A stretch of 35,086 nt of DNA from Octopus sinensis. Taxonomy: Eukaryota. The first letter of the stretch is position 1. Each line of letters opens with the position of its first letter. The notes under the pieces are model-generated. The model worked only from the letters and a program-made list of their open reading frames with translations, had not been told where the DNA came from and made no database searches. Position numbers and translations under genes: made by a program. Positions 8,491 through 29,642 of this stretch are shown here, one piece after another. The DNA lies in assembly GCF_006345805.1 (NCBI RefSeq), contig NW_021829868.1, positions 1-35,086 on the forward strand. Direction: 5' to 3'.

Positions 8491-8500
8491 AATAAATAAA

Positions 8501-8902: not shown

Positions 8903-9170
8903 TATTATATAAAAAAATGACCGACATGGTCTGATGGCAAAACCATACACTACTTAAACATAAGGGAAAAGCTGGATGAATAAATCTGACAGTATTTGCG
9001 GCGAGCATATAAAAATGCCACAGATATACGGTAGGGAAGAGAAAAAAGGTTAGAATCTACAATTGACTCTACCACAAGTTGGCTGAACATTTTATGAAAC
9101 ACAGTGTGACAAAAGATCAAACAGAAACAAGGGACTTGATCAGACCCGCTTCAATTTTAGTAGGTGAACT

Positions 9171-9586: not shown

Positions 9587-9920
9587 GGTGAACTGGTTGG
9601 AAAGAAAGAGAGGAATATAGGTGGACAGTAGGAGCCATGATGGAAGTGGGGAACTGAAGGTGACATTCTAACTCTGCGTAAAGATCTGAGCTGCATAGAA
9701 AAATTGTCAAAAGGGCAATGGAAAAATGGAAAAGAAAGTGCAAGGGTGTGTGGTACCAAATAGAAAAGAAAGGGTTCAAAACTGTCATCGAAACCCTAAA
9801 ACGAGTCCATCATGGTTTGAAAATTACTTGTATTTTATATACTTATCAAAATTAAAACGAACCTTCCTATATTGTTGGGATTATTGGGTGTGTACATGTG
9901 TGTGTATGTGTGTGTGTATG

Positions 9921-9952
<32 letters not shown>

Positions 9953-10064
9953 AACAACCAATAAGGGTGAGAAATTTTTATACTAATTTAATAGTACATC
10001 CATTTAACACCTAGTGACTTAGTGCATATAAGAAACCCGGATTTTCATACATTTTATATATAAA

Positions 10065-10174
10065 TATAAGAGAGCGACCACTATGTAGTTGTGCTAATAT
10101 TCACTGGAGACATTTTTTATGTGGCTGAAGCCCAATGGTCTATTTTTAGTGCTCATAGTGGTCGCTCTCTTATA
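10065..10174. mobile_element. Tiny TA-flanked MITE-like inverted repeat
   Basis: Perfect 21-bp inverted repeat TATAAGAGAGCGACCACTATG (10065-10085) / CATAGTGGTCGCTCTCTTATA (10154-10174). Confidence 0.7.
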
Positions 10175-10233
10175 TATATATATCATCATCATCATATATA
10201 TATATATATATACATACATACATATAGATTCAC

Positions 10234-10267
<34 letters not shown>

Positions 10268-10703
10268 ATATATATATGATAATAATATAAGTATATGCAT
10301 ATATATATATTCATAAATATATGCATATATACATACATATATTTATATACCTACACATATATACAAGCACATATGAGTACAGGACATAAAAATAACGTTG
10401 AACACAATGAGAAACGAAAACATAGAAAACGAACTTTTTTTCAAACAACAAAAAAACTAAACAGAGAAATGCGACATGCACCATAAAGAGTATTCCCCTT
10501 CATCAGTTGTCCCTGTTTCATCTACTCCGCGCTTCAAAGGTAATTTTTTTTGTTGATGTCCTGTACCCATATATGCATGTATATATACATATATATGTAG
10601 GTATGTACATATATGTATGTATATATATGCATATATTTATACATTATTTATAGTATATAATCGAACGCCGTGCACCCTTTTCCAAGTGAGTTTTATCTTT
10701 ATA

Positions 10704-11497
10704 TACGAGGGACGTTCAATAAGTAATGCCTCTGACCCACTTGCAGTTGTTTGATCTAGCTGAAATTTTGCATGTGCAATTATTTATATCTCTATAGAGT
10801 AAGTGGCAAATTACAGCTCTGAATTAATTGTGGTTTCTGATTTACAGGTGTTTGAACCGAGTCAAGTGTGAAATGGAGCCTGTTGAGTGTCGAGCAGTGA
10901 TCCGGTTTTTGTATTTGAAAGGACGCACACCACGTGAGACTTTTGATGAAATGAAAGTAACTTATGGTGATGATGCCCCATCATATGACCGTGTAAAACG
11001 CTGGCATCGTGAATTCAAACATGGTCAGAACTCTGTGGAAACAGCTCCCAGATCTGGTCGCCCCTTCTGCCATTGATGAGGCGTCTGTCCGTCAAGTTGA
11101 GGCTGCCATTTTGGAAGATCAACGCATAATTATTCGCCAAATAGCCCATGAGGTCAAGATTAGTACCGGGTCTGTGGAAGCTATCATTCATGACCATTTG
11201 CATATGCAAAAGGTGTCTGCCAGATAGATTTCCAGGTTGCTCACGCCTTTCCAGAAGCAAGAACGCGTCGAGTTCTCGAGGGTGAATTTGGAGATGTGCC
11301 AAGAAGATGAGTCAAAATTTTTCAAAAGACTGATTACACAGGATGAAACCTGGGTCCATCACGATGATCCAGAGGCCAAAGCCCAGTCAATGCAGTGGAA
11401 GCACCGTGACTCACCCCCTCCAAAGAAGGCAAGGGTACAGCCCTCCGCTGGCAAGGTCATGCTCACAGTCTTCTGGGACCAGGACGGAGTAGTGATG
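10704..11497 (+). pseudogene. Mariner transposon, 5' half: TIR plus decayed transposase, 3'-truncated
   Basis: TACGAGGG..TTCAATAAGTAATGC TIR-like start after TA. ATG at 10873 gives MEPVECRAVIRFL..VKRWHREFK..PRSGRP, then a frameshift, KVSAR*IPRLLT and ITQDETWV..GKVMLTVFWD. It is cut off before the remaining catalytic Asp residues. Confidence 0.92.
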
Positions 11498-11586
11498 AAT
11501 AAGTCCTGGGGTCGATTCCTCGACTAAAAGGTGGTGCTCCAGCATGGCCACAGTCAAATGACTGAAACAAGTAAAAGAGTAAGAGT
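11498..11586 (+). mobile_element. SINE family A 3' tail fragment truncating the mariner
   Basis: AATAAGTCCTGGGGTCGAT..CCAGCATGGCCACAGTCAAATGACTGAAACAAGTAAAAGAGTA matches the family A tail. Confidence 0.85.
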
Positions 11587-11884
11587 ATATATATGTATGT
11601 ATCTCTATCTATCTATATAAAGCGCTAACAATTTAAATGAGATGTAAATAAATAATATAGATATAATCATCCAACATCTGACTACTTTATTACTCTAGAT
11701 ATGTGTGTGTGTGGTGTGTGTGTGCATGCATAGTATACACATCACACATTTGATGCATCAAATTCCACAAGGCAAATCATTAATTCATTTGATTTCTCTT
11801 TATTTCAAAATTTCATAATAAAATAATAGTAAAAAAAAAATAAAAAAAATACAATAAACATTATGTGTGTGTGTGTGTGTGTGT

Positions 11885-11987
11885 CATCATCATCATCATT
11901 ATCATCATCATTTAACATCCACGTTCCATGCTGGCATGGTTGGATGGTTTGACTGTGAATGGCAAGACAGATGGCTGCACCAGGCTC
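11885..11987 (-). mobile_element. RTE 3' terminal fragment with (GAT)n tail
   Basis: Reverse complement matches the 14120-14207 RTE end (..CCAACC.TGCCAGCATGGAA..GGATGTTAAATGATGATG). Confidence 0.7.
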
Positions 11988-12002
11988 ATACATATATATA
12001 TA

Positions 12003-12221
12003 TGTTTGTGTGGTATATTGACATTTCTGTGATAACGATCCCTATTGATCAATTTTGTTTCCTCTTCCTTTTTTTTATCCCCCCCCCTTTTTTTGTCCTC
12101 TTTCTTTCCTTTTACGATCCCATTTAATCGAAAACCAAACCCCCTTTTTTATCCCCAAAAGAAAAGCTCTACCTTGTAATTTGTCCTGTCTGTGTGCAGC
12201 CCTGTGTGGCTAATAAAGAAA
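12003..12221 (+). mobile_element. Probable LINE 3' UTR fragment sharing its tail with SINE family B
   Basis: Pyrimidine-rich stretch ending TTTGTCCTGTCTGTGTGCAGCCCTGTGTGGCTAATAAAGAAA, similar to the family B tail TTTGTCCCCTCTATGTTTAGCCCCTTGTGGGCAATAAAGAAA. Confidence 0.45.
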
Positions 12222-12516
12222 CAGACCGACCAGTCCATCAGATGTTGTTACACATCGCTGGTCACAATGCGTTCGCATTGTTTTAGCCTTTGAATGACGC
12301 CACCCCACTGGCTAAGCGAGCAGGCCAACAGAAGAAAGAGTGGGAGAAAGTTGTGGCGAAAGAGTACAGCAGGGATCACCACCCCCTGACGGAGCTTCAT
12401 AGAGTATTTAGGTGTTTTCACTCAATGAACACTCATAACGCCCAGTCTGGGAATTGAAACCGCGATCCTACGACCGCGAGTCCGCTGCCTTAACCACTTG
12501 GCCATTGTGCTTCCAC
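12222..12516 (-). mobile_element. SINE family C (tRNA-Arg-like head)
   Basis: Head GTGGAAGCACAATGGCCAAGTGGTTAAGGCAGCGGACTCGCGG..GGTTTCAATTCCC with A and B boxes. Shares its 5' ~190 bp with 29260-29642. Confidence 0.85.
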
Positions 12517-12603
12517 ACATACATACATATATATATATACATATACATATACATATATATATATATATATTTACATGCAACATGGAATACTAATTTATAT
12601 ATA

Positions 12604-14207
12604 CGACAGGGTTCCCCGTTCCCTTATCTGGTGGTCGATGCGGAAACTGGAGATTGAAGAATGGCTAATAAGTGCTGTACAGGCTCTATACAGAGAGGCT
12701 GTCAGCAAGGTTAGGATTGGCAACGAATATAGTGAAGAATTCCGAGTAGAAGTAGGTGTGCACCAGGGCTCAGCCCTCAGTCCCCTTTTATTCATCATAG
12801 TCCTTCAGGCAATAACAGAGGAATTCAAAACGGGATGCCCCTGGGAGCTCCTCTATGCCGATGACCTAGCTCTCATAGCAGAATCACTACCGGAACTAGA
12901 AGAGAAATTTCGGGTGTGGAAGCAAGGGTTGGAATCAAAGGGCCTTAAAATAAATGTAGCAAAGACCAAAGTATTAGTAAGCAGCATAGGTACTCATAGC
13001 ACACATCCCCTCGGGTAGGTGGCCCTGCTCACCTGTAGGAAAGGTACAGGTAGAACTCCATAAGATGCACCCAATGTAAGTTATGGACACATAAGAGGTG
13101 CAGCAACATTAAAGGGAAATTAACAGATAAGATAGCTTTCATGTGCGGCAGATGCACAGGGACAATAGACACAACAGACACTCAGAAAACAGATTCCATC
13201 ACACTCCAGGGAGAGAAACTAGAAGTAGTTGATAGTTTTCCGCTACCTGGGAGACCAAGTTAGTAGTGGAGGTGGATGCACAGAGTATCACCACTAGAAT
13301 ACGAATAGCCTGGGCAAAGTTCAGAAAGCTCCTACCCCTACTGGCAACAAAAGGTCTCTCCCTCAGAGCAAAAGGTAGATTGTATGATGCATGTGTGGCG
13401 AACTGCCATGCTTCACGGTAATGAAACATGGGCTGTGACTGCAGAAGACATGCGTAGACTTGAAAGAAATGAAGCTAGCATGATCCGCTGGATGTGTATG
13501 TCAGTGTGCATGCAAAACAGAGTGTAAGTATCCTGAGAGAAATGCTGGATATAAGAAGCATCAGATGTGGTGTGCAAGAGCGACGCTTGCGATGGTATGG
13601 TCATGTGCTGCGGATGGATGAAGAGAGATGTGTGAAGAAGTGCCACTCTCCCAAACAGTTGAAGGTATCAGGGGGAGAGGTAGACCCAGGAAGACATGGG
13701 ATGAGGTGGTCAAGCATGACCTCAGAGCATTGGGCCTCACTGAGGCAATGGCGAAGGACCGAGATCTCTGGAGATATGCTGTGACTACAAAGACCCGGGC
13801 TGCTTTCTGCAGCAATTCCACATACCCCCTACCCATTCTAAGTACCCCAGATCCCCAAAGTACCCTGGATCCCCAAAGTACCCCGATCCCCTACCCTGGA
13901 CCTCTGGATCCCCAAAGTACCCCGATCCCCAAAGTACCCCGGACTTCGTTGCCCCCGTGCCGCTGACACGTTAAAATGCTCGAACCGATCGTGACGATGC
14001 CGGACCCTCCGGCCCCTGTGCAGGTGGCACGTAAAAAGCACCCAATCCACTCACGGAGTGGTTGGCGTTAGGAAGGGCATCCAGCCGTAGAAACTCTGCC
14101 AGATTCAGACTGGAGCCTGGAGCGGCCCCTGGCTTCCCAGACCCGGTCAAACCGTCCAACCCGTGCTAGCGCGGAAAGCGGACGTTAAACGATGATGATG
14201 ATGATGA
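12604..14207 (+). mobile_element. 5'-truncated RTE-clade LINE, decayed RT C-terminal half plus 3' UTR
   Basis: GVHQGSALSPLLF..LLYADD..GLKINVAKTKV RT motifs, then RRLRWYGHVLRM and GRGRPRKTW, with frameshifts. 17-18-bp tandem repeat at 13840-13945; (GAT)n tail. Confidence 0.95.
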
Positions 14208-14675
14208 TTGCATGGTACAGTTATAGAAACTCACAAACAAAACTCAAAGTTTCTGCATTAACGATATGATGATTGTGGTATTTCCTCAGGTATTAGAAAC
14301 TTGATGACAAAAACAAAACAAAAAAAAAACGTCACTGCTGTTAGGAAAGATCCCCATTATACATTCAAGATCCACTGCAACCACAAGGGAGCCAGCCACA
14401 TGAATTCGATATCTAATTTCCCACCAGTAGCTCATCATAGTATTGTGGGAAGCAAATCTCGTGACTATTTATTTCTATAACTCAAAGTTATCATGGAACA
14501 TGGCAAGTTGTTCAAAACCTTTCTTCTTCCCAGAAATCTTTATTGAATCCTGTATACTCACTGTATACATTCATTTGTCGTGTGTCTGAATAAAACCTTG
14601 AACACGAAGATACTCGCACTGAACGAGCGTTGTCATTATTTACTGCACAGTGGTATTTCATGGTAATTGGATTAA

Positions 14676-14879
14676 CCCTTTCGTTACTGTATTTATTTTG
14701 AGATGTTCCGTATTTCTTTCAATTATTTTAAATACAACAAAGAATTTAGTACAATAACTTAATTATCATTAAGCTAGTGTTAGGAACATAAATTGGGACT
14801 AAGGTTTGGTGGAAGATTTTAATTCAAAACTTTTGAAAACAAGACATTTGTACTTAGAGCCAGGTTGGTAACGAAAGGG
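14676..14879. mobile_element. piggyBac-like MITE in the predicted TNF 3' UTR
   Basis: TTAA|CCCTTTCGTTAC ... GTAACGAAAGGG|TTAA: 12-bp TIRs with TTAA at 14672-14675 and 14880-14883. Confidence 0.88.
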
Positions 14880-14926
14880 TTAAAATAAATGACCCTCAAT
14901 AAAATGAGAGTGCTGTCACTCACATT

Positions 14927-15312
14927 CTATGGAGGTTCATTTATTTTCAAAACGGTGATAGACAGGTGGCTTGTGTGCTTGTCAGGGCTGATGAATTTTA
15001 CCATGTTCATCTTCAGAAAGATTGTGTCATTAGCTTTCAATTTGCGTGTAACTGATAATTCTATTATCTCATGTTTTGATATATGTGAGGAATCTAAAGT
15101 CTTTTTCTTAGATTCAATCTTTGTTTCATTCTTTGTGTACAAAGTTAGGAATAAATGAAAGTCTGGTGTATCTTCTGAAAAATAAAGTTGTACTACAAAT
15201 TTTATGTCATAAACTCCATCTTGTGGTATAGTAATATAGGTTCCATCAATCAATTCTATGTCGCCTTCTTGCTGGTTCTCATCTTTAATCCACTGCAAAT
15301 AAGTCATTTCCA
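14927..15312 (-). CDS. TNF-superfamily ligand paralog B, last exon (TNF homology domain)
   Basis: Acceptor TTTCCATTTCAG|TG (phase 1). Reads EMTYLQWIKDENQQEGDIELIDGTYITIPQDGVYDIKFVVQLYF...ELSVTRKLKANDTIFLKMN..SHLSITVL, aligning by eye with TNF motifs LQW..G.EL.D..L.VP..G.Y.I..QV.F and ..FQL.KGD.L..FGI. Stop TAG at 14929-14927. Confidence 0.85.
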
Positions 15313-15378
15313 CTGAAATGGAAATCAATAATAACAACAACAATAAATACATATTAATTTTTTTCACACAGCAATATA

Positions 15379-15750
15379 GGCGCAGGAGTGGCTGTGTGGT
15401 AAATAGCTCGCTTACCAACCACATGGTTCCGGGTTCAGTCCCACTGTGTGACAACTTGGGCAAGTGTCTTCTACTATAGCCTTGGGCCGACCAAAGCCTT
15501 GTGAGTGGATTTGGTAGATGGAAACTGAAAGAAGCCCGTCATATATATGTATATATATATATGTGTGCGTGTATGTTTGTGTGTCTGTGTTTGTCCCCCC
15601 AACATCGCTTGACAACCAATGCTGGTGTGTTTACGTCCCCGTAACTTAGCGGTTCAGCAAAAGAGACTGATAGAATAAGTACTAGGCTTACAAAGAATAA
15701 GTCCTGGGGGTCAATTTCCTTGATTAAAGGCGGTGCTCCAGCATGGCCAC
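15379..15750 (+). mobile_element. SINE family A, near full length
   Basis: GGCGCAGGAGTGGCTGTGTGG head through CCAGCATGGCCAC. Lies 66 bp from the last-exon acceptor. Confidence 0.9.
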
Positions 15751-16033
15751 ATGTTGGAGGCTTGCATGCTTGTTTGCTCGCAAAATACCCTTAAATCTGT
15801 AATTTCAGTTATTTAATGGGCATAATGCAAATTATGAGAAAAAGTGTGCAATAAATCTGTATAAATTAGCTTACCCAACTCTTTGTAACCCTTTGTTTTT
15901 AGGTAAAACAAGGCATGGTGAACTGAAAATTAAGAAGAGAGAAAGCAGACAGTGAGAAGGATATATTTTAATATAGGTTCAATATCAACAGAAGACTATT
16001 CAAAGAAAAGAGTACCTCCTGATGTATTTCATA

Positions 16034-16338
16034 CTAGCATTATAGCCCGGCATTGCTTGGGTTTGTAAGGGAAGTAACTATATAAGCATTTTAGAGTTTT
16101 TCTTCCCTTATATAAAACCGAGTGAAAAATGGATTAAAAACGGGGAAAAATGATGGTAAATTTTTTTTTAAATCGTAGACTCATCGTAGATGCGCACTAA
16201 TACCTAGAAGAGCTCGATATGAATCACAACTATAGGATACCCGCTTTTGGTTAAACTGCACTGCAAAATGTGGGAGTAGTTAGGAATCTAAATCGGAGTA
16301 GACAGACACACACACAACTACAGTTTTATATATAAAGA
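16034..16338 (-). mobile_element. Non-autonomous Helitron, same family as 8501-8902
   Basis: Minus strand A|TCTTTATATATAAAA ... CCCAAGCAATGCCGGG-CTATAATG-CTAG|T. Confidence 0.85.
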
Positions 16339-16485
16339 TATTGAATACTTCAGATTAGCATCTAATAAACAATTATACAACATATTAACTGTTTTACAAT
16401 CATCATTAACCATAATGAAAATGATCTATATGGAGAACAAGTATTAACCATTAATGAAAGAGTGCCAAGACTAAGCATCCATTAA

Positions 16486-16931
16486 GGCGGCGAGGTGGCA
16501 GAAACGTTAGCACGCTGGGCAAAATGATTTGTGGTATTTCGTCTGTCGTTATGTTCTGAGTTCAAATTCTGCCGAGGTCGACTTTGCCTTTCATCCTTTC
16601 GGGGTCCATAAATAAAGTACCAGTTTCGCACTAGGGTCGATGTAATCGTCTTAATACCTTTGTCTGTCCTTGTTTGTTCCCTCTATGTTTAGCCCCTTGT
16701 GGGCAGTAAGGAAATAAGAAACATTAGCACACCGGGCGAAATGCTTTGTGGTATTTTGTCTGTCGTTACGTTCTGAGTTCAAATTCCACCGACGTCAACT
16801 TTGCCTTTCATCCTTTCGGGGTCCATAAATAAAGTACCAGTTTCGCACTGGGGTCTATGTAATCGGCTTGATCCGTTTGTCTGTCCTTGTTTGTCCCCTC
16901 TATGTTTAGCTCCTTGTGGGTAGTAAAGAAA
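16486..16931 (+). mobile_element. SINE family B head-to-tail dimer
   Basis: Full monomer GGCGGCGAGGTGGCAGAAACGTTAGC..GGAAATAAG joined to a second copy that restarts at AAACATTAGCAC. Confidence 0.9.
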
Positions 16932-17056
16932 TATATATAAGCATCCATATATTTCACACATCGCACAGTAGTTACGTGAGCTTTAACATGGTCATCTAAA
17001 GCCATTGTCCAGTCAAATATTATAGGCATTTTTTTCATATATTTAATGATATCTTT

Positions 17057-17466
17057 TTACTCTCTTTTACTCTTTTACTTGTTTTAATCATTTGACTGCG
17101 GCCATGCTGGAGCACCGCCGTTAGTCAAGCAAATCGACCCTGGGACTTATTCTTTGTAAGCCCAGTACTTATTTTATCGGTCTCTTTTGCCGAACCACTA
17201 AGTGACGGGGATGTAAACACACCAGCATCGGTTGTCAAGCAATGCTAGGGGGAAAAACACAGACACACAAACATACACGCACACATATTTATATACATAT
17301 ATACGACGGGCTTCTTTCAGTTTCCGTCTACCAAATCCACTCAAAAGGCATTGGTCTGCCCGGGGCTATAGCAGAAGACACTTGCCCAAGATGCCATGCA
17401 GTGGGACTGAACCCGGAACCATGTGGTTGGTAAGCAAGCTACTTACCACACAGCCACTCCTGTACC
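17057..17466 (-). mobile_element. SINE family A, full length
   Basis: Reverse complement of the family A head, body and (AGAGTAAA)n tail. Confidence 0.9.
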
Positions 17467-17654
17467 TGTGTGTATTTTTGCCATTTATTTCTTTAGTATG
17501 TCTGTTTTTTTTCATGTTGAAGGTATTACTATCTATTTTAAGACTGTAGTGTATTAAGGAGATGTTCAGTGATTTCATTGACATTACAATATGTTACAGT
17601 GTCATGATATTATGAACATGCAAAAAGCAAAATAATGGCAAAACATGTACTTAC

Positions 17655-17694
17655 ATTTAGAAGCTGGTGTCTGAACTTGTACTTTACTTTGTTT
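17655..17694 (-). CDS. TNF-ligand paralog B, 40-nt micro-exon (KQSKVQVQTPASK plus 1 nt)
   Basis: Polypyrimidine acceptor TTTTCTTTTTCTCTCTAATTTAG and donor T|GTAAGT. Phase 0 in and phase 1 out bridge exon 1 and the last exon exactly (159+40+386=585 nt). Confidence 0.7.
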
Positions 17695-17757
17695 CTAAAT
17701 TAGAGAGAAAAAGAAAATTAAGATAAGATCGTGTCAGCTGTTGTTTGCATTACTTAC

Positions 17758-17955
17758 ATCATATTGCTGTCCTTTTTAATGATTGTATCAAGACTGACAC
17801 TGTCTTGTTATAATCTTGGATCAGACTTGATATTTGTACCAATACATTTAATGTTGTAGCTGATGTTGTCATCCTTTAGCTTCCAGATTAATGTGGAGAA
17901 GGTTGTTGCATGTCTCTTCTTGTGGTGTCTGAAGGCTGAAAGATGTTTGTTGTAT
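17758..17955 (-). other. Candidate additional stalk exon (198 nt, phase 0-0), not open as assembled
   Basis: Strong donor GAT|GTAAGT, a 63-nt intron-like gap to the micro-exon, and acceptor TTTTAATCCAG. Needs a +1 and a -1 correction in A runs to read through. Confidence 0.3.
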
Positions 17956-18356
17956 CTGGATTAAAATTTTTGTCTACTGATTCAATATAATACCTGGTCT
18001 TAGTAATAACATCACAAAAAAGATCCCTAGACAAAAACTATATAGATGTTTGATATGTTCCCTTGAAAAACGGTATCTTTTAAAAACTTAAGAACCTCCA
18101 ATGACTGTAAAAATTACAGAGAAGGGATTTTTTCCTTGTGTCCACCTTTTATAAAATACATCTTAATGAGGATTAAATATAGACCACCTGAAACATTATA
18201 AACTATTCTAGTATGGTTTGTGTAATTTTGATATCTATAAGACACTGGTTGTATTTGCTGTGGAGGTGATTATCTTCCCTGTGTTTTTCTATCTATCTTT
18301 TTCTAAATGTGCATTCTCATTCCAATGTCAACGACATTGAATTGCATATATATATA

Positions 18357-18730
18357 CTAGTAGTATAGCTCAGCATTGCCTGGGATTAAGTTAGGATTAT
18401 TAAGTGATCAAGCGCTATATTTCAAACCAAAATAAGTGACATCAGCATCAAATTTGACTGAAATCCGTTGAAATTGGTAATCATTTGGCTGAAAATGGGT
18501 TGCAGGCAATTTGATTGGGAAATCCCATAAGGAATTGGTTTATTTATTATTCTACTCATTGATTGTTTTTTTGTTTTTGTTTTTGAGGAATTCAAAGACC
18601 CCATGAGTCCTAAGCAATGCTGGCTTCACGTTTGAGCAAAATGTGTCGAAATTGGTAAAAGTTATGGTTGAAAATGAGGTGTAGCCAATTTTAGTGGGAA
18701 ATCCTATGAGGAATTGGTTTATCAGTTTTT
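18357..18730 (-). mobile_element. Possible old Helitron-like 3' end with ~120-bp internal repeats
   Basis: Minus-strand CCCAGGCAATGCTGAG..CTAG|T end; two diverged copies of GAAATTGGTAA..GGGAAATCC.AT.AGGAATTGGTTTAT. Confidence 0.4.
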
Positions 18731-18767
18731 TATTCTGATTGAATGAAAAACCCCATATATATACATA

Positions 18768-19230
18768 TTTACTCTTTTACTTGTTTCAGTCATTTGATTG
18801 TAGCCATGCTGGAGCACCGCCTTTAGTCAAGCAAATCGATTCCAGCACTTATTCTTTGTAAGCCTAGTACTTATTCTATTTTATATGTATGTATGTGTGT
18901 ATATGTTTGTGTGTCTGTGTTTGTCCCCCCCAACATCGCTTGACAACTGATGCTGGTGTGTTTATGTCCCCATAACTTAGCGGTTCGGCAAATATATATA
19001 TAAACGACTGGCTTCTTTCAATTTCCGTCTACCAAATCCACTCAGAAGGCTTTGGTCAGCCTGAGGCTATAGTAGAAGACACTTGCCCAAGGTGCCACGC
19101 AGTGGGACTGAACTTGGAACCATGTGGTTGGTAAGCAAGCTACTTTATTTTATCTAATTTGCCACAGGGGCATTACACAGATGCAGCTTTGCGGGCTGGA
19201 CATAGACATTGATGGTATGAATGATGGTAT
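18768..19230. repeat. Family A SINE with internal inversion plus flank, duplicated at 22657-23115
   Basis: Minus-strand SINE whose central TGTGTCTGTGTTTGTCCCC..GCGGTTCGGCAAA segment is in plus orientation. The same structure and unique flank recur ~3.9 kb away. Confidence 0.85.
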
Positions 19231-19567
19231 AAAACTGGTTTTATATTATGACTTGCTAAAGGTGACCCACTTTACGCGTGGCTGGAGCTCTGATTGTTAC
19301 TTTCTGTTTCTTATCACCACATTCTCACTCTCTGTTTCTCTCTCCTTTCTCACTTTTCCACTCTCTTACTCTTCCTTTCTCTCGGACTCTCCTTCGCTTT
19401 CTCTCACTCTTTATCTTTCTCTATCTATCTCTCTTCCATTTATAAAAAATTAGATTTCTGTGTTTAAATTACAAATCCACTTCCACTTTACCATGCTGAA
19501 AATTTGATTGAAATCGGGCAAAAGGTGTCCGATCTAGACCCCCCCCCCCCCAGTGTCTCCCAAAATC

Positions 19568-20299
19568 GAATCTTTTCCTTTTGAACGGCAGTTGTCAACA
19601 CAATTTCTAGTTAATTAAACACTTTTAAACTTTGTATACTGGTAGAATATGTCAGAATAAAAGACATTTTTCTCTTGGCTTTCTTGAGAAAATTGTAATT
19701 TGTAAGTTTAACGTAGTTTAATTTTTCAAATTTTAACCAATCAATGGCCTCTATTGAGCTAAAATCATTTGCTGCGTCTAAAACTGAGACAACATCCTGC
19801 CACTAACCTTAACCCTAACCCTATATTTTAGCCTTTTGTTTTTTTTTCTTAATTGTTCAATTAATTTAATTGTTACGCGTGTGTCTAAAATTATTTGTTT
19901 TATTTTTGTTTTGAGATACATGTGTAATGTTTAAACTATTTTCCATTGCTTAAGAAAAAAGAAACGAAAGGCTAAAACGAAAGCAACGGAAAATAATTTA
20001 AACAATTAACAAACAAAATAATTCTATAATTTTATACACGTGCTTTCTGTACGTAAACATAATAGTGACAGGATGTTTGTCTCAGTTTTAGACGCAGCAA
20101 ATGATTTTAGCTCAATAGAGGCCATTGATTGGTTAAAATTGGAAAAATTAAATTACATTAAACTTACAAATTACAATTTTCTCAAGAAAGCCAAGAAAAA
20201 AATGTTTTATTTTGACACATTCTACCAGTATATGAAGTTGAAAAGTATTTAGTTAACTAGAAATTGTGTTGAAAACTGCCGTTCAAAAGGAAAAGATCC
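19568..20299. mobile_element. Fold-back MITE with ~230-bp TIRs and 8-bp TSD, related to 9171-9586
   Basis: Ends G(A)ATCTTTTCCTTTTGAACGGCAG / CTGCCGTTCAAAAGGAAAAGATCC. TSD CCAAAATC at 19560-19567 and 20300-20307. Confidence 0.9.
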
Positions 20300-20853
20300 C
20301 CAAAATCAATAAAATCCCAGTTTTCACACCAAAGCAACAACCATAGCGCCCCAAAACGTCTCGCAATCAATTTCCCACCTCAAGTTATCCACTCCTGTAA
20401 ACATTAATCCCCTTCCAGCCCCATTTAGACCCCTTTTTACATAAAAATCCAATTTGTCTCAACGTTTGCCTTCTTCATTTTATAGATTAGACAGATATAC
20501 CGGGACTTGCCTGGGATTAAAATAGTTTATTATTGTTTTACTTGTTTCGGTATTATAACCCGATTTCATTCAGGTCTACGGGGGCCACATTTTAAAAGAT
20601 GAGGAATTTTGCCCCAGAGGCGATGCCTTTCAATTGAGCAAACTCAAAGTTGCCATGCAAACTTGCTAGCACATTTAACATAGGTGTGCATATTTTCAGC
20701 TGAATCCGCTCACGTATGCACACATTATATATATGCATACACATTAAATATGTACATATATACGCATTCTATATACATGTCTATACACATATATATTTAT
20801 ATATATATATATATATATCTACACACATATATACAAATATATACACTTTATAT

Positions 20854-21881
20854 ATAAGATGCACCAAATGTAAGCTATGGACACATAAGAGGTGCAGCAA
20901 TGTCAAAGGAAGGCTAATTAGGAAGATAGTTTTTGTATGTGGCAGATGCTCAGGAGCAATAAACACTGAAAATGCTCTGAGGCCAACTTCCGCCACATTC
21001 CAGGGAGAAAACTAGAAATAGTTGATAGCTTCCGTTAAACCTAGGTGACCAAGTCAGTAGCGGGGGCAGGTGTGCTGAAAGTGTAACTGCTAGAGTAAGA
21101 ATAGCCTGGGCAAAGTTCAGAGAGCTCTTACCTCTGCTGGTGTCAAAAGGCTTCTCGCTCAGAGTAAAAGGCAGACTGTATGATGCATGTGTACGAACAG
21201 CCATGCTACATGGCAGTGAAACATGGGCCGTGACTGCTGAAGATATGTGTAAGCTTGCAAGAAATGAAGCCAGTATGCTCTGATAGATGTGTAACGTCAG
21301 TGTTCATACTCGACAGAGTGTAAGTACCTTGAGAGAAAAGTTGAACCTAAGAAGCATCAGTTGTGGTGTGCAAGAGAGACGTTTGTGCTGGTATGGTCAT
21401 GTGGCAAGAATGGATGAAGATAGTTGTGTGAAAAAGTGCCACACCCTAGCGGTTGAGGGAACCTGTGGAAGAGGCAGACCCAGGAAAACCTGGGACGAGG
21501 TGGTGAAGCACGACCTTCGAACTTTAGGTCTCACCGAGGAAATGACTTGTGACCAAGACCTTTGGAAGTATGCTCTGTGTGAGAAGACCTGGCAGGACAA
21601 GTGAGGCCATAACCCGGGGCCTTTACCTGGGATGTAGCCAGTCCACCTATGCATACCTTTCCTTCTTGGGACACAAAACACTACTTGTGAAGACCTGCTG
21701 AGGCAAGTGAAAATCAAATCAAAATAAAAAATCAAAATCATCAACATCAATGGAAATTGCAGCTGTGATACCAGTGCCGGTGGTACGTACGTAACAGAAC
21801 CATCCGAACGTGTTCGTTGCCAGCGTCGCCCCGACTGGCCTCGTGCAGGTAGCATGTAAAAAGCACCATCCGATCGTGGCT
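20854..21881 (+). mobile_element. Second decayed RTE LINE fragment (3' ORF part plus partial UTR)
   Basis: Reads ..RIAWAKFRELLPLL..GRLYDACVRTAMLHGSETW.. and ERRLCWYGHVARM..GRGRPRKTW, with stops and frameshifts. Confidence 0.92.
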
Positions 21882-21884
21882 GTA

Positions 21885-22076
21885 ACGTCATTGATTAGTT
21901 GAAATTGCAGAAATTGAAGAAAAATAACAACAAATATTTTACAAACTATAGAATTTTCTCAATAAAGCCAAGAGAAAAAGATGCTTTATAAACACATTCT
22001 ACCAGTAACAAAGTTTAAAAGTGTTTAGTTACATGGAAATTATTTAAAAAACTGCCGGTCAAAACCGAAAAGATCC
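21885..22076. mobile_element. Right half of the 9171-type MITE
   Basis: Matches ~9390-9586 and ends AAAACCGAAAAGATCC. Confidence 0.85.
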
Positions 22077-22080
22077 AGTT

Positions 22081-22430
22081 TTAAATAAGGTAAGAAAAAT
22101 TTCAAAATTTTTCCATAAATCTCCTACAAAAACTGAAATTTTGCAAGATTTTGTACAAGTGAACTTTGCTAACAAAGAATATAAACTTATACTGGATTGC
22201 AGAAATAGGTGGAATAGCACATTCCATGTGATTGAGAGATTTTTGAAATTAAAAAGCTGCATTCCAAATGCTCTACGAGCAGTACTTTCCACAGATGCCG
22301 GAGCTGACGAAGAATGAAAATCTCTCGATTTACTATATGAAATTCTGCATCCAATAGAAATCATTTTGAAGGCTATTTGCGCTGATGATACAGATTTACC
22401 GAAAGCGGAATATAGAACTTTAAATTTCAA
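22081..22430 (+). pseudogene. hAT transposase fragment
   Basis: LNKVRKISKFFHKSPTKTEILQ..LILDCRNRWNSTFHVIERFLKLK..DEE*KSLDLLYEILHPIEIILKAIC. RWNST motif typical of hAT transposases; TGA replaces a usually conserved Trp. Not in the ORF track. Confidence 0.85.
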
Positions 22431-22656
22431 AAGAAGAAAAAAAATTGTGACATATGACTGTATGTGTGTGAGCTTTCTTGCTAGTTTTTTTAAGTAATTT
22501 ACTAATGACTGAAACAAATATATAAATGAAAATAAATAAAAGACTATCAGTACTTAATGGGAATAAACTTTTGGTGGACTTGTACACATTACATATATCT
22601 ACAGAATAGAAGTTGAAATTTCAAAGTTTTCTTTTAGTAATTTAGTCTCTTTACTA

Positions 22657-23115
22657 TTTACTCTTTTACTTGTTTCAGTCATTTGATTGTGGCCATGCTG
22701 GAGCATCGCCTTTAGTCGATCAAATCGACTCCAGCACTTATTCTTTGTAAGCCTAGTACTTATTCTATTGTATATATATGTATGTATGTGTGTATATGTT
22801 TGTGTGTCTGTGTTTGTGCGCTCCAACATCGCTTGACAACTGATGCTGGTGTGTTTATGTCCCCATAACTTAGCGGTTCGGCAAATATATATATAAACGG
22901 GCTTCTTTCAATTTCCGTCTACCAAATCCACTCAGAAGGCTTTGGTCAGCCTGAGGCTATAGTAGAAGACACTTGCCCAAGGTGCCACGCAGTGGGACTG
23001 AACCTGGAACCATGTGGTTGGTAAGCAAGCTACTTTATTTTATCTAATTTGCCACAGGGGCATTACACAGATGCAGCTTTGCGGGCTGGACATAGACATT
23101 GATGGTATGAATGAT
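22657..23115. repeat. Second copy of the internally inverted family A SINE plus flank
   Basis: Near-identical to 18768-19230, including inversion junctions and downstream TTTATTTTATCTAATTTGCCACAGGGGC..GATGGT. Confidence 0.85.
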
Positions 23116-23831
23116 GGTGATGGAACAATGATGATGATGGGAGAAGACGAAAGCGCCCGCCGACTTCTGCTTCTCTAAAACAATGTTCTTTTTTCAAAAA
23201 ATCACAAATGAGGCAATAAACCTCTTATTCAATATATTACAATGTTCTATTTTTTTCTTTTAAAACACACAGACAGTTCAGGTTACCCGGCTGACCGGCG
23301 CTTGCTACTAAGCAAGCTACATACCACACAGCCACTCCTGCGCCCACACTCTGAAAAGTATTTGTATAAATTTTCATTAAAAAATATCCATTTTTCTGAA
23401 ACAAAGCCAAAAGGTGTGAATTTTCTGAAACTCTTCTTTCCAACCATAGAGAATGTTTTCCCAACAAATTCAAATGCAATCAGAATTCCTGCCATTGAAA
23501 TGTAATTGTAAAAAAATTTCATTAAAACAAATCCATTTGACTGCAAGTTATGAGGAAACAAGTCGTGGGTGGAGTTATCATGTGTAATCCTTTTTCTATT
23601 ATTGGCACAAGGCCTGAAATTTTGTGGTGAGGGAAATATTCGATTAAATCAACCCAGCGCTTCACTGGTACTGGTTTTATCAACCCCGGAAAGATGGAAT
23701 GTAAAGGCAACCTCAGAAGCATTTGGACTCAGAAAATAAGGATGGACAAAATGCCCAACAACATTTTGTCCGGCGTGCTGACCGTTCTGCCTACTCGGCA
23801 CCTTTGTCGAAAGTAATTAAAAAGAATTTAC

Positions 23832-23990
23832 CAGAGTTACTGCTACAGCAATAGCAATGATCACTGCACATAATACTGCTAGTACAACGATGATAGATAC
23901 TTTGTTTTCCTTTATCTTCGATGTTAATGACTTTTTCCGATCTTTTCCTTTTTCATTAGCCCCTTGATCAGCTCCTCCACAAGGCATCAT
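23832..23990 (-). CDS. TNF-ligand paralog B, exon 1 (cytoplasmic tail plus type II TM anchor)
   Basis: MMPCGGADQGANEKGKDRKKSLTSKIKENKVSIIVVLAVLCAVIIAIAVAVTL (53 codons): basic juxtamembrane stretch then a 23-aa hydrophobic helix. Phase-0 donor CTG|GTAAAT at the same position as in paralog A. Confidence 0.8.
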
Positions 23991-24019
23991 TTGTAATGTA
24001 CCATTCACTATAGCTTGTC

Positions 24020-24070
24020 GAATGAAGCGAGATTAAGTTTAGTCAGCTTTATATAGTTACAAGGAAGTGA
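24020..24070 (-). promoter_or_regulatory. TATA box plus Inr core promoter of paralog B with adjacent ETS-like site
   Basis: TATAAA first T at 24053 and Inr-like TCATTC A at 24023 (spacing 30). AGGAAGTG at 24062-24069. Confidence 0.65.
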
Positions 24071-24124
24071 ATGAGACTTCGTTGACACACCTTTCTCAGG
24101 TACTTTCTTGCTAACTCAACTGCT

Positions 24125-24745
24125 TCTCTTCTCTCTCTCCCCCTCTCTATCTATCTTCTCTCTCCCCTCTTGTCTTTCGCTTTCTATCTCCTCCCGTCAC
24201 TCCTCCCTTTCTCTCTCCCCCTCTCTATCTTCTCTCTCCCCTCTTGTCTTTCGCTTTCTATCTCCTCCCGTCACTCCTCCCTTTCTCTCTCCCCCTCTCT
24301 ATCTTCTCTCTCCCCTCTTGTCTTTCGCTTTCTATCTCCTCCGTCGTCACTCCTCCTTTCTCTCTCCCCCTCTCTATCTTCTCTCTCCCCTCTTGTCTTT
24401 CGCTTTCTATCTCCTCCCGTCACTCCTCCCTTTCTCTCTCCCCCTCTCTATCTTCTCTCTCCCCTCTTGTCTTTCGCTTTCTATCTCCTCCCGTCACTCC
24501 TCCCTTTCTCTCTCCCCCTCTCTATCTTCTCTCTCCCCCTCTCTATCTTCTCTCTCCCCTCTTGTCTTTCGCTTTCTATCTCCTCTCTCCCCTTCTCTAT
24601 CTCCTCTCTCCCCCTCTCTATCTTCTCTTTCCCCTCTTGTCTTTCGCTTTCTATCTCCTCCTGTCACTCCTCTCTTTCTTTTTCCCCCTCTCTATCTCCT
24701 CTCGCTCTTTGTCCTTCTCTCTCTTTCTTTCTATTCTTTTCTATC
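24125..24745. repeat. CT-rich ~74-bp minisatellite (~7 units)
   Basis: TGTCTTTCGC recurs at 24171, 24245, 24319, 24394, 24468, 24563 and 24638. Only ~2-3 units at the paralogous 4710-4940. Confidence 0.9.
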
Positions 24746-25024
24746 TCTCCTCCAATCACATTTACTTAATTTACTTATATCCAGTTTTTTTATATTTTTT
24801 TTTTTTTGCAATTGGCAATAGAAACAGTATCAATACCCTTTCTACTATAGGCACAAGACTGAAATTTGGTGGGGAGAGGTTTCACAATGTTTCACTGGTA
24901 CTCATTTTATTGACCCCGAAAGGACGAAAGGCAAAGTCAAGCTCAGTGGAACTCAGAATGTAGCAGACAAAATACCCCAAAGCATCTTGCCTGTCGGGCT
25001 AACGATTCTGCCAGCTTGCTGCCC

Positions 25025-25438
25025 TAATAATAATAAGAACAACAACAACAACAACAATTATAATGATAAATAATAATAACAATAATAATAATAATAATAA
25101 CAACAACACAACAACAACAATACTTATAATAATAATAATAATAATAATAACAACAACAATAATAATGATAATAATAAGAACAGCAACAACAATAATAATG
25201 ATAAATAATAATAACAATTATAATAATAATAACAATATAATAATAATAATAACAACAACAACAACAATAATGATAAATAATAATAACAATAATAATAATA
25301 ATAATAATAACAACAATAACAACAACAATGATAATGATAATATTAATAATAATAATAATAATAATAATAATGATAATAATAATATAATAATAATAATGAT
25401 GATAATAATAATAATAATAATATAATAATAATAATAAC

Positions 25439-25472
<34 letters not shown>

Positions 25473-25500
25473 TAATAAAATAATAATAACAACACAACAA
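25025..25500. repeat. (AAT/AAC/GAT)n microsatellite
   Basis: Pure trinucleotide mosaic; source of spurious poly-N/I/L/Y ORFs. Confidence 0.95.
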
Positions 25501-26468
25501 AGGCACAAGGTCTGAAATTTTTTGTGGAGGGGACCAGTTGATGACATTGACCCCGGTCATTCACTTGTATTTCATTATCAACCCCATAAGAATGTAAGGC
25601 AAAGTAGACTTGAGCGGAATTTGAACTCAGAATGTAAAGATGGATGAAATACTGCTAAGCATTTCGCCTGGCCTGCTAACGTTTCTTATTTCTTTATTGC
25701 CCACAAGGGGCTAAACATAGAGGTGACAAACAAGGACAGACAAACGGATTAAGTCGATTACAACGCCCCCCCCCCAGTGCATAACATGTACTTAATCTAT
25801 CGACTCCGAAAGGATGAAAGGCAAAGTCGACCTCGGCGGAATTTGAACTCAGAACGTAATGGCAGACGAAATACCTATTTCTTTATTGCCCACAAGGGGC
25901 TAAACACAGAGGGGACAAACAAGGACAGACAAAGGGATTAAGTCGATTACATCGCCCCCCCCAGTGCATAACAGGTACTTAATTTATCGACTCCGAAAGG
26001 ATGAAAGGCAAAGTCGACCTCGGCGGAATTTGAACTCAGAATGTAACAACAGACGAAATACCTATTTCTTTATTGCCCACAGGGGCTAAACATAGAGGGG
26101 ACAAACAAGGACAGACAAAGGGATTAAGTCGATTACATCGCCCCCAGTGCGTAACAGGTACTTATTTTATCGACTCCGAAAGGATGAAAGGCAAAGTCGA
26201 CCTTGGCGGAATTTGAACTCAGAACGTAACGGCAGACGAAATACCTATTTCTTTATTGCCCACAAGGGGCTAAACATAGAGGGGACAAACAAGGACAGAC
26301 AAAGGGATTAAGTTGATTACATTGATCCCAGTACGTAACTGGTACTTAATTTATCGACCCCGAAGGATGAAAGACTAAGTCGACCTCGACGGAATTTGAT
26401 CTCAGAACGTAACGGCATATGAAATACTGCCAAGCATTTCACACGGCATGCTAATGATTCTGCCAGCT
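25500..26468 (-). mobile_element. SINE family B multimer, copy B (4 units) plus older SINE
   Basis: Units at ~25686, 25874, 26061 and 26243; paralogous to 6766-7908. Confidence 0.9.
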
Positions 26469-26620
26469 CAACATCCTAACAACAACAACAATAATGATAT
26501 GACTGAGGAACAGAGAAATCTCAGGAAAAGACTCATGGACGTAAGAATTGCATGAACAGAGACCAAGTCGGTGAATTTAAGTAACAATGTGAAACACGTG
26601 TATAAGTATGTATGTATGTG

Positions 26621-26654
<34 letters not shown>

Positions 26655-26685
26655 TGTATATATATACTTACAGTATATATATGCA

Positions 26686-27088
26686 TACTCTCTTTTACTT
26701 GTTTCAGTCATTTGACTGCGGCCATGCTGGAGCACCGCCTTTTTTAGTCGAGCAAATGGACCCCGGGACTTATTCTTTGTAAGCCCAGTACTTATTCTAT
26801 CGGTCTCTTTTGCCGAACCGCTAAGAGACGGGGACTTAAACACACCAGCATCGGTTATCAAGCAATGCTAGGGGGACAAACACAGACACACAAACACACA
26901 CATGCATATATACATATATATATACATATATATGACAGGCTTCTTTCAGTTTCCGTCTACCAAATCCACTCGCAAGGCATTGGTCGGCCCGGGGCTATAG
27001 CAGAAGACACTGACCAAGATGCCACGCAGTGGGACTGAACCCGGAACCATGTAGTTGGTTAGCAAGCTACTTACCACACAGCCACTCA
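26686..27088 (-). mobile_element. SINE family A (paralog of 8093-8490)
   Basis: Same element and flanks as in copy A. Confidence 0.9.
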
Positions 27089-27253
27089 ATAAATAAATAT
27101 TATATAAAAATGACCGACATGGTCTGATGGCAAAACCATACACTACTTAAACATAAGGGAAGAGCTGGATGAATAAATCTGACAGTATTTGCGGCGAGCA
27201 TATAAAAATGTCACAGATATACGGTAGGGAAGAGAAAAAGGTTAGAATCTATA

Positions 27254-27665
27254 GGCGCAGGAGTGGCTGTGTGGTAAGTAGCTTGTTTACCAACCACATG
27301 GTTCCGGTTCAGTCCCACTGTGTGGCACCTGGGCAAGTGTCTTCTACTATAGCCTCGGGCCGACCAAAGCCTGTGAGTGGATTTGGTAGACGGAAACTGA
27401 AAGAAGCCTGTCGTAATATGTATATATATGTGCGTGTGTGTGTTTGTGTGTCTGTGTTTGTCCCCCTAGCATTGCTTGACAACCGATTGCTGGTGTGTTT
27501 GTGTTCCCTTCACCTAGCGGATCGGCAAAAGAGACCGATAGAATAAGTACTGGGCTTACAAAGAATAAGTCCCGGGGTCGATTTGCTCGACTAAAAAGGC
27601 GGTACACCAGCATGGCTGCAGTCAAATAACTGAAACAAGTAAAAGAGTAAAAAGAGTAAAGAGTA
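27254..27665 (+). mobile_element. SINE family A, full length, specific to duplicate copy B
   Basis: Copy A has the empty site GGTTAGAATCTACAATTGACTC (~9048-9069). Confidence 0.9.
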
Positions 27666-28288
27666 ATTGACTCTACCACAAGTTGGCTGAACATTTTACG
27701 AAACACAGTGTGACAAAAGAGCTAACAGAAACAAGGGACTTGATCAGACCCGCTTCAATTTTAGTAGGTGAACTGGATCTTTTCGGTTTGAAAGGCAGAG
27801 GTTCTCTTGTTCCTTAATACCCACTACTGTCTATATTCTTCTATCTCTCTCTCTCCTTATTTTTGTATCTGACATCGTCAACCATGCATAACTCCAGCTA
27901 AAGATAATATCTATCAATAACAGCGTGCCTATAGATGTGATCGATCTCAGCACTTCATTGGGACTTATAGATTCAAGCCTCTAATTTCGTTATAGTTGAT
28001 TAAATCATTCGCTGAACTTGACTGGTTTTTATTAAAATTTTATCGATCATAGAAGTTTGAAAAGCGAGGTTTAATAGATGCTTAGAGTTATCTCCCTTCC
28101 ACCATTATTTTCACATTCTACGCTTTCAACGAGCGATTTTTATTAAGACTAAATCTCTTCGAATTTATCTTTATATATTTTATATCAGTTCTGAAGTACG
28201 GTTGCTGCATTTCTATATTTTTTCTGTTTATCCCAGTATTGTCTTTAGTATTTTATCCCGCTTGGACCTTCAAGGAGCTTGCTTTCTA

Positions 28289-28493
28289 AACACATGGTTC
28301 CGGGTTCAAATCCCACGGCGTGGTACCTTGAGCGAGGCTCTACGATAGCCCCGGGCCGACCAAACCCTTGTGAGTGGATTTAGTAGACTGAAACTGAAAG
28401 AAGCCCGCGTATATATATATATAATATATATATATATGTGGTGTGTGTGTGTGTGTGTGTGTGGTGTGTGTGTGTGTGTGTGTGTTGTGTATA

Positions 28494-28564
<71 letters not shown>

Positions 28565-28812
28565 GGAGAGAGATGCATTCTTATTTATATATACGTTTGT
28601 GTGTTTGTGTTTGTTCCCCACCTACCATCGCTTGACAACTGATGCTGGTGTGTTTACGTCCCCGTAACTTAGCGGATCAGCAAAAGAAGCCGGTAGAATA
28701 GTACTAGGCTTATAAAGATTAAGTCCTGGGATCGATTTGTTCGACTAAAGGTGGTGTTCCAGCATGGCCGTAGTCAAATGATTGAAGTAAAAGAATGGAA
28801 AGAGTAAAATGG
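28289..28812 (+). mobile_element. SINE family A, diverged, with expanded internal microsatellites
   Basis: CACATGGTTCCGGGTTC..GTGAGTGGATTT..GTTCCAGCATGGCC with long TA/TG/TC/AG tracts. Confidence 0.8.
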
Positions 28813-28926
28813 GTAGTGTAGTATTGGACGGGATGTTCATGGCTGGATCGCTTTTGATTATACATCTGTTTGATCGATATTGACTTCAGGTTTAAAAAAA
28901 AACTACATATAAAATATATTTTATAT

Positions 28927-29157
28927 ATTTCTTTATTGCCCACAAGGGGCTAAACATAGAGAGGACAAACAAGGACAGACAAAGGGATTAAGTCGATTAT
29001 GTCGACCCCAGTGCGTAACTGGTACTTAATTTATCGACCCCGAAAGGATGAAAGGCAAAGTCGACCTCGGCGGAATGTGAACACAGAACGTAACGACAGA
29101 CGAAATACGGCTACGCATTTCGCCCGCCGTGCTAACGTTTCTGCCAGCTCGCCGCCT
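28927..29157 (-). mobile_element. SINE family B full-length monomer (~230 bp)
   Basis: Minus strand GGCGGCGAGCTGGCAGAAACGTTAGC .. GCCTTTCATCCTTTCGGGGTCGATAAA .. GGGCAATAAAGAAA. Confidence 0.9.
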
Positions 29158-29259
29158 CTACATACAAAATATATTTCATATATTTCTTTACTATATATAT
29201 ATATATTTCTTTAACAAAATATATTTTATAATAGACGGCCTGACATAATGAAGAGCAGG

Positions 29260-29642
29260 GAAGCACTCCGTCGGTTACGACGATGAGGGTTCCGGTTGAT
29301 CCGATAACGGAACAGCCTGCTCGTGAAATTAACGTGTAAGTGGCTGAGCACTCCACAGACACGTGTACCCTTAACGTAGTTCTCGGGGATATTCAGCGTG
29401 ACACAGAGAGTGACAAGGCCGGCCCTTTGAAATACAGGTACAACAGAAACAGGAAGTAAGAGTGAGAGAAAGTTGTGGTGAAAGAGTACAGCAGGGATCA
29501 CCACCATCCCCTGCCGGAGCCTCGTGGAGCTTTTTAGGTGTTTTCGCTCAATAAACACTCACAACGCCCGGTCTGGGAATCGAAACCGCGATCCTATGAC
29601 CGCGAGTCCGCTGCCCTAACCACTGGGCCATTGCGCCTCCAC
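29260..29642 (-). mobile_element. SINE family D (tRNA-Arg-like head), full length with TSD
   Basis: Head GTGGAGGCGCAATGGCCCAGTGGTTAGGGCAGCGGACTCGCGG..GGTTTCGATTCCC. Direct repeat ACATAATGAAGAGCAGG at 29243-29259 and 29641-29657. Confidence 0.92.

Follow-up and report, generated by a model that had tools for sequence, protein, structure and literature searches.

Ligands of the tumour necrosis factor superfamily (TNFSF) are type II membrane proteins, and homotrimers of their TNF homology domain (THD) signal by clustering TNF receptors with cysteine-rich domains (CRDs). Drosophila Eiger and the molluscan TNFSF expansions are likewise type II TNF ligands of invertebrates. For Octopus vulgaris, the supplement of a preprint counts 8 Eiger-type ligands and 4 Wengen-type TNF receptors (TNFRs), and in the tree given there, six O. 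vulgaris TNFSF paralogues form a monophyletic cluster that is specific to the lineage; in the text and supplement of this source, the octopus proteins stand without accession numbers (10.1101/2024.07.27.603686).

Here we analyse LOC118761074 of Octopus sinensis, which lies on contig NW_021829868.1 (RefSeq assembly GCF_006345805.1); the stretch of 35,086 nucleotides that was studied is referred to as the window. LOC118761074 is located on the minus strand (coding sequence 23990..14927), is intact and has four exons, and it very probably encodes a type II membrane TNFSF ligand of 210 amino acids, a member of an octopod-specific, tandemly duplicated subfamily. The RefSeq gene model, the automatically annotated THD relatives and, through the preprint, the TNFSF expansion of O. 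vulgaris are already known, and literature searches on the locus and accession names returned no paper naming this locus. New are the family assignment for LOC118761074 and the partial escape of its subfamily from the Pfam threshold. An "uncharacterized protein" of RefSeq can thereby be named by its family, and its reading is corrected. The gene does not stand for a new kind of system; it represents one more copy in the lineage-specific expansion of TNF ligands in octopuses, animals in which immune signalling is poorly characterised. Since several members, the window protein included, fall below the Pfam TNF threshold, censuses that rely on profiles only, such as the one arriving at 8 ligands in O. 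vulgaris, probably undercount the octopod family.

The octopod TNFSF paralogues used for comparison include A0A0L8H1L3, A0A0L8FY84, A0A0L8H6M7 and others from O. bimaculoides, LOC115227685 from O. sinensis and XP_029654294.1 from O. vulgaris. The window protein shares with them the tail, the transmembrane (TM) helix, a Pro/Gln-rich stalk and the THD, as well as the FHHAxFxLKTxGY, LQW and IPQDGxY motifs; THD identities range from 37% to 95%, and the four-exon layout is the same where checked. Several of these paralogues already bear automatic names, in the case of the O. bimaculoides members in UniProt "TNF family profile domain-containing protein" or "THD domain-containing protein". Unlike its relatives, the window copy scores lower against Pfam TNF (no reported match) and carries eight copy-specific substitutions in exon 4, with seven amino-acid changes, one of which creates an NDT sequon. 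Its stalk is among the shortest in the octopod family.

With the vertebrate ligands TNF-alpha, lymphotoxin-alpha, RANKL, TL1A, CD40L, FasL and TRAIL the octopus protein has in common the type II arrangement, a predicted ten-strand jelly roll and a THD encoded mostly by the last exon. In the case of lymphotoxin-alpha, even the A'-B'-B-C core can be aligned at the sequence level. In contrast to the vertebrate ligands, however, the octopus THD lacks Cys and hence disulphides, a furin site is missing from the very short stalk, and identities over the structural alignments reach only 11-20%. As many vertebrate ligands score alike, we make no claim of orthology to a single one.

Gene model and protein layout

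A preliminary description of the stretch had proposed a complete TNFSF gene on the minus strand, composed of the exons 23990..23832 (159 nt), 17694..17655 (40 nt) and 15312..14927 (386 nt). These exons do have canonical splice sites, and they join in frame into 585 nt (194 aa) without a stop and with the protein sequence quoted there. Yet the gene is not complete in this form, as a coding exon of 48 nt (15922..15875) was missed between the second and the third of these exons. Because this exon has 48 nt and phase 1-1, it can be skipped in frame, and therefore the three-exon join looked complete. The full coding sequence, 23990..23832 / 17694..17655 / 15922..15875 / 15312..14927, amounts to 633 nt (210 aa), with canonical splice sites for all four exons. 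Its translation is identical to P0001, the RefSeq model for the window contig ("uncharacterized protein LOC118761074 [Octopus sinensis]"). Compared with the 194-aa protein, P0001 has FHHALFYLKTKGYKELV in place of the junction Leu and is otherwise equal. The splice sites, the TATA box and the residue-level features of the protein given in this section were read directly from the window sequence. The parts of the gene are as follows, with slashes marking exon borders and strands as predicted by the structural model described below:

24047..24055, minus strand: putative TATA box (TATATAAAG), 57 nt upstream of the ATG
23832..23990, minus strand: coding exon 1, 159 nt, aa 1-53; Lys/Arg-rich cytoplasmic tail and TM helix; donor CTG/GTAAAT, phase 0 end
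17695..23831, minus strand: intron 1, 6137 nt, with bounds from the exon coordinates; repeat-filled, with a retroelement fragment on the opposite strand
17655..17694, minus strand: coding exon 2, 40 nt, aa 54-66; stalk KQSKVQVQTPASK; borders TTTAG/AAA and AAAT/GTAAGT, phase 1 end
15875..15922, minus strand: coding exon 3, 48 nt, phase 1-1, aa 67-82; FHHALFYLKTKGYKEL plus the first base of V83; strand A and start of the A-A' loop; borders TTTTCAG/TT (upstream, with a strong polypyrimidine tract) and TTGG/GTAAGC (downstream)
14927..15312, minus strand: coding exon 4, 386 nt with the stop codon counted, aa 83-210; THD from strand A' through strand H; acceptor TTTCAG/TG; TAG at 14927..14929
14692..14697, minus strand: candidate poly(A) signal from a pattern scan, the first AATAAA past the stop (~230 nt)
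AATAAA beginning at 14544 and 14473 and ATTAAA at 14823, minus strand: further candidate poly(A) signals from the same scan

Both O. vulgaris (locus L001, OX597837.1) and a second O. sinensis scaffold (L002, VCDQ01004715.1, which encodes P0002) show the same four-exon layout, with exon 3 as a separate exon. Exon 2 is 100% identical between the window and L002. As exon 4 alone matches paralogues with E values down to 1e-40 (phmmer), the gene is far beyond chance. The statement that most of the THD resides in the last exon holds true for exon 4, while strand A is located on the preceding 48-nt exon; an in-frame first-pass exon model can thus still lack a structural strand. The open reading frame (ORF) list indeed holds only two pieces of the gene, 14927..15463 (178 aa) and 23817..24008 (63 aa). 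The notion of a gene hidden in repeats is apt insofar as an interspersed repeat of ~400 bp, tandem arrays and retroelement fragments crowd the introns, but the gene was already present in RefSeq and merely unnamed.

At the protein level, a Lys/Arg-rich tail of 30 residues precedes a hydrophobic segment of 23 residues (31-53), and there is no signal peptide layout. The net charge is about +5 in the 15 residues before the TM segment versus +3 after it. With a cytoplasmic tail, a single TM anchor and a C-terminal ectodomain, this is the type II topology of TNFSF ligands. The stalk is short, comprising ~14 residues (54-67), and the previous impression that there was almost none is an artefact of the missed exon. 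Other details of the preliminary description are borne out, namely a Cys-free THD, the two sequons NET and NDT and the lack of a furin (RxxR) site in the stalk. Its motifs LQW and L...D.I are present as well, whereas a third string had been given one dot short and should read G..EL.DG..I.IP..G.Y.

Assignment to the TNF superfamily

Several points weigh against the assignment. Neither in its 194-aa nor in its 210-aa form does the window protein match the Pfam TNF or C1q profiles at E<=10, and a phmmer search of the Protein Data Bank (PDB) gave no relevant match. Furthermore, the assignment relies on the family together with a structure prediction for which only 13 sequences were used. In addition, the coding changes among the closest copies, described in the next section, are almost all non-synonymous, which fits relaxed constraint on a recent duplicate no less than adaptive change. 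The preliminary description had made its case depend on a TNF-profile match; taken literally, this is lacking at the level of the single sequence, for which Pfam reports none, and the case stands only by way of the family. Since the searches with the single protein were empty, the family was needed for the assignment.

The gathering score of the Pfam TNF profile (PF00229) is 23 bits. Two relatives exceed it, P0007 with 26.7 bits and P0014 with 27.6 bits, both along profile positions 1-124 of 127, and P0014 also carries a precomputed PF00229 match. The closest paralogues, P0002 (20.4 bits) and P0003 (22.0 bits), remain just below the cutoff, and P0005 (19.9 bits) does not reach it either. The window protein is 94% identical overall to P0002, and phmmer ties it to P0007 at E=3e-26 and to P0014 at E=6e-14. 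An exhaustive single-sequence phmmer search with the last exon against 1.84 billion representatives yielded 14 proteins, and all relatives that were traced are from octopods (O. bimaculoides, O. sinensis, O. vulgaris and Argonauta hians). The taxonomic reach of the family is judged from this exhaustive search, as the profile searches were word-indexed; they returned five proteins among the 8000 candidates to which scoring was limited with the full-length alignment, and seven from 307 with the THD only, none of them outside octopods. By these searches, no sequence link leads from the octopod family to TNFSF proteins of squid or other molluscs.

When the family profile was compared with 177,635 PDB sequences, lymphotoxin-alpha (7dov_A) was the sole significant match (E=2.2e-5 and 1.8e-5). 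The alignment covers only ~53 residues, from the A-A' loop to strand C, and includes the LxW ... IPxDGxY core. The FHHAxFxLKTxGY stretch encoded by exon 3 is among the more conserved ones in the 13-member family alignment. This alignment, although shallow, was the basis for an AlphaFold2 monomer model with a mean pLDDT of 80 across the protein; between residues 71 and 200, the block means are 82-96. The model consists of a helix at residues 30-54 and a beta sandwich of ten strands, in which residues 69-74 from exon 3 form strand A (block-mean pLDDT 68 for residues 61-70 and 93 for residues 71-80). Foldseek retrieved 368 PDB matches at E<=1e-3. The best 50 of these are all RANKL, TNF-alpha, TL1A, CD40L, FasL or TRAIL structures, with a probability of 1.00, E values from 1.3e-8 to 1.1e-7, target-normalised TM scores of 0.60-0.82 and 11-20% identity. 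The predicted ten-strand jelly roll (A, A', B', B, C, D, E, F, G, H) is therefore closest to solved TNFSF ligands. All positions that are invariant across the family (L88, W90, G99, G115, Y117, I119 and I201) are kept in the window protein. According to the alignment and the model, W90, Y117, I119 and I201 sit on strands A', C and H, a placement that is consistent with a trimer core. The family Pfam scores, the lymphotoxin-alpha match, the AlphaFold2 model and the Foldseek result together support what had been proposed, a diverged cephalopod type II ligand of the TNF superfamily, and it is the family and not the single sequence that settles this reading. The Pfam TNF profile, which had been suggested as a check, leaves the window protein without a match but recognises its relatives P0007 and P0014.

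In this gene, exon 1 provides the basic cytoplasmic tail and the 23-residue anchor, exon 2 the short stalk, exon 3 strand A and exon 4 the rest of the THD. From general TNFSF biology, a mode of action can be proposed. The THD may assemble into a homotrimer at the cell surface via hydrophobic residues of the inner sheet, and the trimer could then cluster a CRD-type TNF receptor on a neighbouring cell, with signalling probably in a haemocyte, immune or apoptosis context. Because the stalk has only ~14 residues and no RxxR site, the ligand most likely would act in its membrane-bound form or, if shed, be released by a metalloprotease rather than by furin.

It was also necessary to consider whether the three-exon transcript with the 194-aa product is real or even the main form, and whether the jelly roll belongs to another class of protein. 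The in-frame nature of the 48-nt skip and the canonical junction 17655/15312 would permit the shorter transcript. However, the skipped exon is preceded by a strong polypyrimidine tract with CAG and followed by a GTAAGC donor, and it encodes the conserved FHHAxFxLKTxGY motif. As the exon-to-residue map places strand A (residues 69-74) on this exon, the 194-aa form would lose that strand. Moreover, every annotated relative that was retrieved includes the exon, and no isoform without it is listed for a relative. We thus regard the 194-aa protein as very unlikely to be the real or the main product. As for the second question, C1q and TNF domains share one fold, C1q heads are trimeric too, and C1q families are greatly expanded in molluscs. 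A C1q-domain protein or some other TNF-like jelly roll would accordingly fall into the same fold class, and relative P0013 has a weak, sub-threshold match to BclA_C, a C1q/TNF-like domain (19.5 bits versus a cutoff of 38). Yet the Pfam C1q profile (PF00386) matches neither the window protein (E<=10) nor any of the 13 relatives (E<=10 for P0002-P0004, E<=1 for the other ten). To judge from the residues themselves, a type II TM anchor replaces the signal peptide in the octopus protein, and a collagen stalk of Gly-X-Y repeats is lacking, unlike in C1q proteins. No C1q, adiponectin or cerebellin head occurs among the best 50 Foldseek matches in the PDB, and the only significant PDB sequence match is lymphotoxin-alpha. 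The C1q check called for in the preliminary description thus came out in favour of a TNFSF ligand, and we give the C1q-type alternative next to no credence.

Tandem copies and exon-clustered differences

The window contains a second copy of the first part of the gene, which was found by tblastn, alignment and three-frame translation:

4393..4627, minus strand: second copy of TATA box, 5'UTR and exon 1, with the ATG at 4563 and a GT donor after 4393

This copy is part of a segmental duplication, the two sides of which are 4083..8517 and 23532..27113. Promoter and 5'UTR are nearly identical between the two copies, and the TATA box of LOC118761074 is conserved in the second one (4619..4627). In the copied exon, a deletion of 1 nt, followed further on by an insertion of 1 nt, disrupts the reading frame and leads to in-frame TAA and TAG codons. 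The copy would belong to a neighbouring tandem paralogue, the other exons of which would fall off the contig. We see it as a pseudogene exon or else as an error in the assembly.

The O. vulgaris locus L001 is similarly arranged, as exon 1 occurs there in an additional copy and exons 2-4 are present a second time (8479..8664 and 20330..23091). Exon 4 of this second set shows frame changes and a stop, and the annotated 28.7-kb orthologue jumps over the pseudogene copy. The truncated O. sinensis protein P0004 resembles this middle (pseudogene) copy. In P0005 from O. bimaculoides (XP_052832125.1, 315 aa), strands A to C of a first, incomplete THD are followed by a Pro-rich linker and then by a complete THD; either read-through has fused two tandem paralogues in this model, or the gene truly encodes two THDs in frame. 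Double-THD genes are discussed in the O. vulgaris preprint (10.1101/2024.07.27.603686).

A comparison of window positions 8062..33987 with scaffold L002 revealed that the two are collinear, with 99.4% identity over 19.8 kb and 98.2% over 4.6 kb more. A segment of 1.6 kb that bears a retroelement is found in the window only. The mismatches are far from evenly spread: 14 of 627 coding positions differ (2.2%), as opposed to 84 of 23,639 non-coding ones (0.36%; Fisher p = 2e-7). They cluster in exon 1 together with the promoter, in exon 4 together with the 3'UTR and in one repeat in intron 2, whereas ~5.5 kb of intron 1 contain a single mismatch. All but one of the 14 coding mismatches are non-synonymous, and there is one 3-nt indel in addition. 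When three other copies are taken into account, eight of the nine coding differences in exon 4 are unique to the window copy. Nei-Gojobori counts of non-synonymous (N) to synonymous (S) changes in exon 4 among the three intact copies are 7N:1S, 15N:1S and 10N:0S. Many of the amino-acid changes are located in the predicted surface loops A-A', B'-B and F-G, and in the E-F loop in the O. vulgaris orthologue.

Such a pattern raises the question of whether the gene, albeit intact, is a redundant duplicate of recent origin whose function is decaying, or no more than the second haplotype of LOC115227685. The collinearity with L002 at this level of identity speaks for either, as do the difference in the retroelement-bearing segment, the ratio of 13 non-synonymous to one synonymous change with the additional indel, and the states in exon 4 that occur in the window only. 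For a decaying duplicate, it can be added that the cluster does give rise to pseudogenes, as the frameshifted exon-1 copy in the window and the stop-bearing exon-4 copy in O. vulgaris illustrate. On the other hand, the ORF is complete, its four exons have canonical splice sites, the TATA box is intact, and every invariant position of the family has been retained. Also, the non-synonymous excess taken alone is not significant (~16N:1S on the three-copy tree, one-sided binomial p ~0.13). We therefore consider redundancy, decay or a mere haplotype an unlikely account of LOC118761074, compared with an intact gene for a TNFSF ligand.

The same differences could reflect exon-focused diversifying selection on the octopod TNF cluster or gene conversion between paralogues, a proposal that we likewise consider rather improbable. 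Because the mismatches are patchy, simple positive selection is not the sole reading; much the same picture would arise if paralogues had donated sequence by gene conversion, or if multi-copy sequence had been polished wrongly. The window-specific exon-4 states were found in none of the three other copies, an outcome that speaks neither for conversion nor against conversion from unsampled paralogues. If it is true that the two scaffolds are alleles, the locus would be a hypervariable invertebrate cytokine locus.

Repeats and other features of the window

Fragments of non-LTR retroelements are located on the plus strand at 12605..14206 and 20854..21604. The ORF 12575..13018 matches Pfam RVT_1 (E=2.6e-16) and overlaps the 1.6-kb segment. 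Since this segment is absent from the otherwise collinear L002, it represents an insertion/deletion difference. The fragment in intron 1, which is 78% identical, lies antisense to the gene, and an ORF there has a weak match to a PHD finger (19.6 bits, below the cutoff). Among the small ORFs scanned in this intron (22141..22317 and others), none had a Pfam match, and a possible resemblance to hAT transposases was dropped.

An interspersed repeat of ~400 bp, a size typical of short interspersed elements (SINEs), is present in at least six copies of 88-91% identity in both orientations, with one copy in intron 2 and one in intron 3. Its copies are as follows:

8096..8490, copy of the ~400-bp repeat
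15383..15751, copy of the ~400-bp repeat
17070..17459, copy of the ~400-bp repeat
26690..27087, copy of the ~400-bp repeat
27261..27647, copy of the ~400-bp repeat
34450..34869, copy of the ~400-bp repeat

Rfam and tRNA scans of the window returned nothing, and no tRNA-like head was detected on this repeat. Sites of the kappa-B type (GGGRNWYYCC) are not above chance in the window (three matches versus 2.1 expected). The lone clean palindrome among them, GGGAAATCCC at 18517..18526, is situated deep in intron 1 and was given no weight.

A CT/GA-rich tandem array with a 74-bp unit (24134..24703) begins ~80 nt upstream of the TATA box and gives long spurious 'SLSPSLS' ORFs. Other tandem arrays have a 184-bp unit repeated 4-5 times (in two places) and a 138-bp unit repeated eight times, and a direct duplication of 1 kb is found at the start of the contig. 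These repeats lie at 1..2066, 6953..7866, 25687..26427 and 32692..33799. Finally, intron 1 contains a direct repeat of 463 bp, the two copies of which (18766..19228 and 22655..23118) are 96% identical and 3.9 kb apart. The pair is also present in L002; it brackets the ORFs of the retroelement tail and could represent the terminal repeats of an inserted element.

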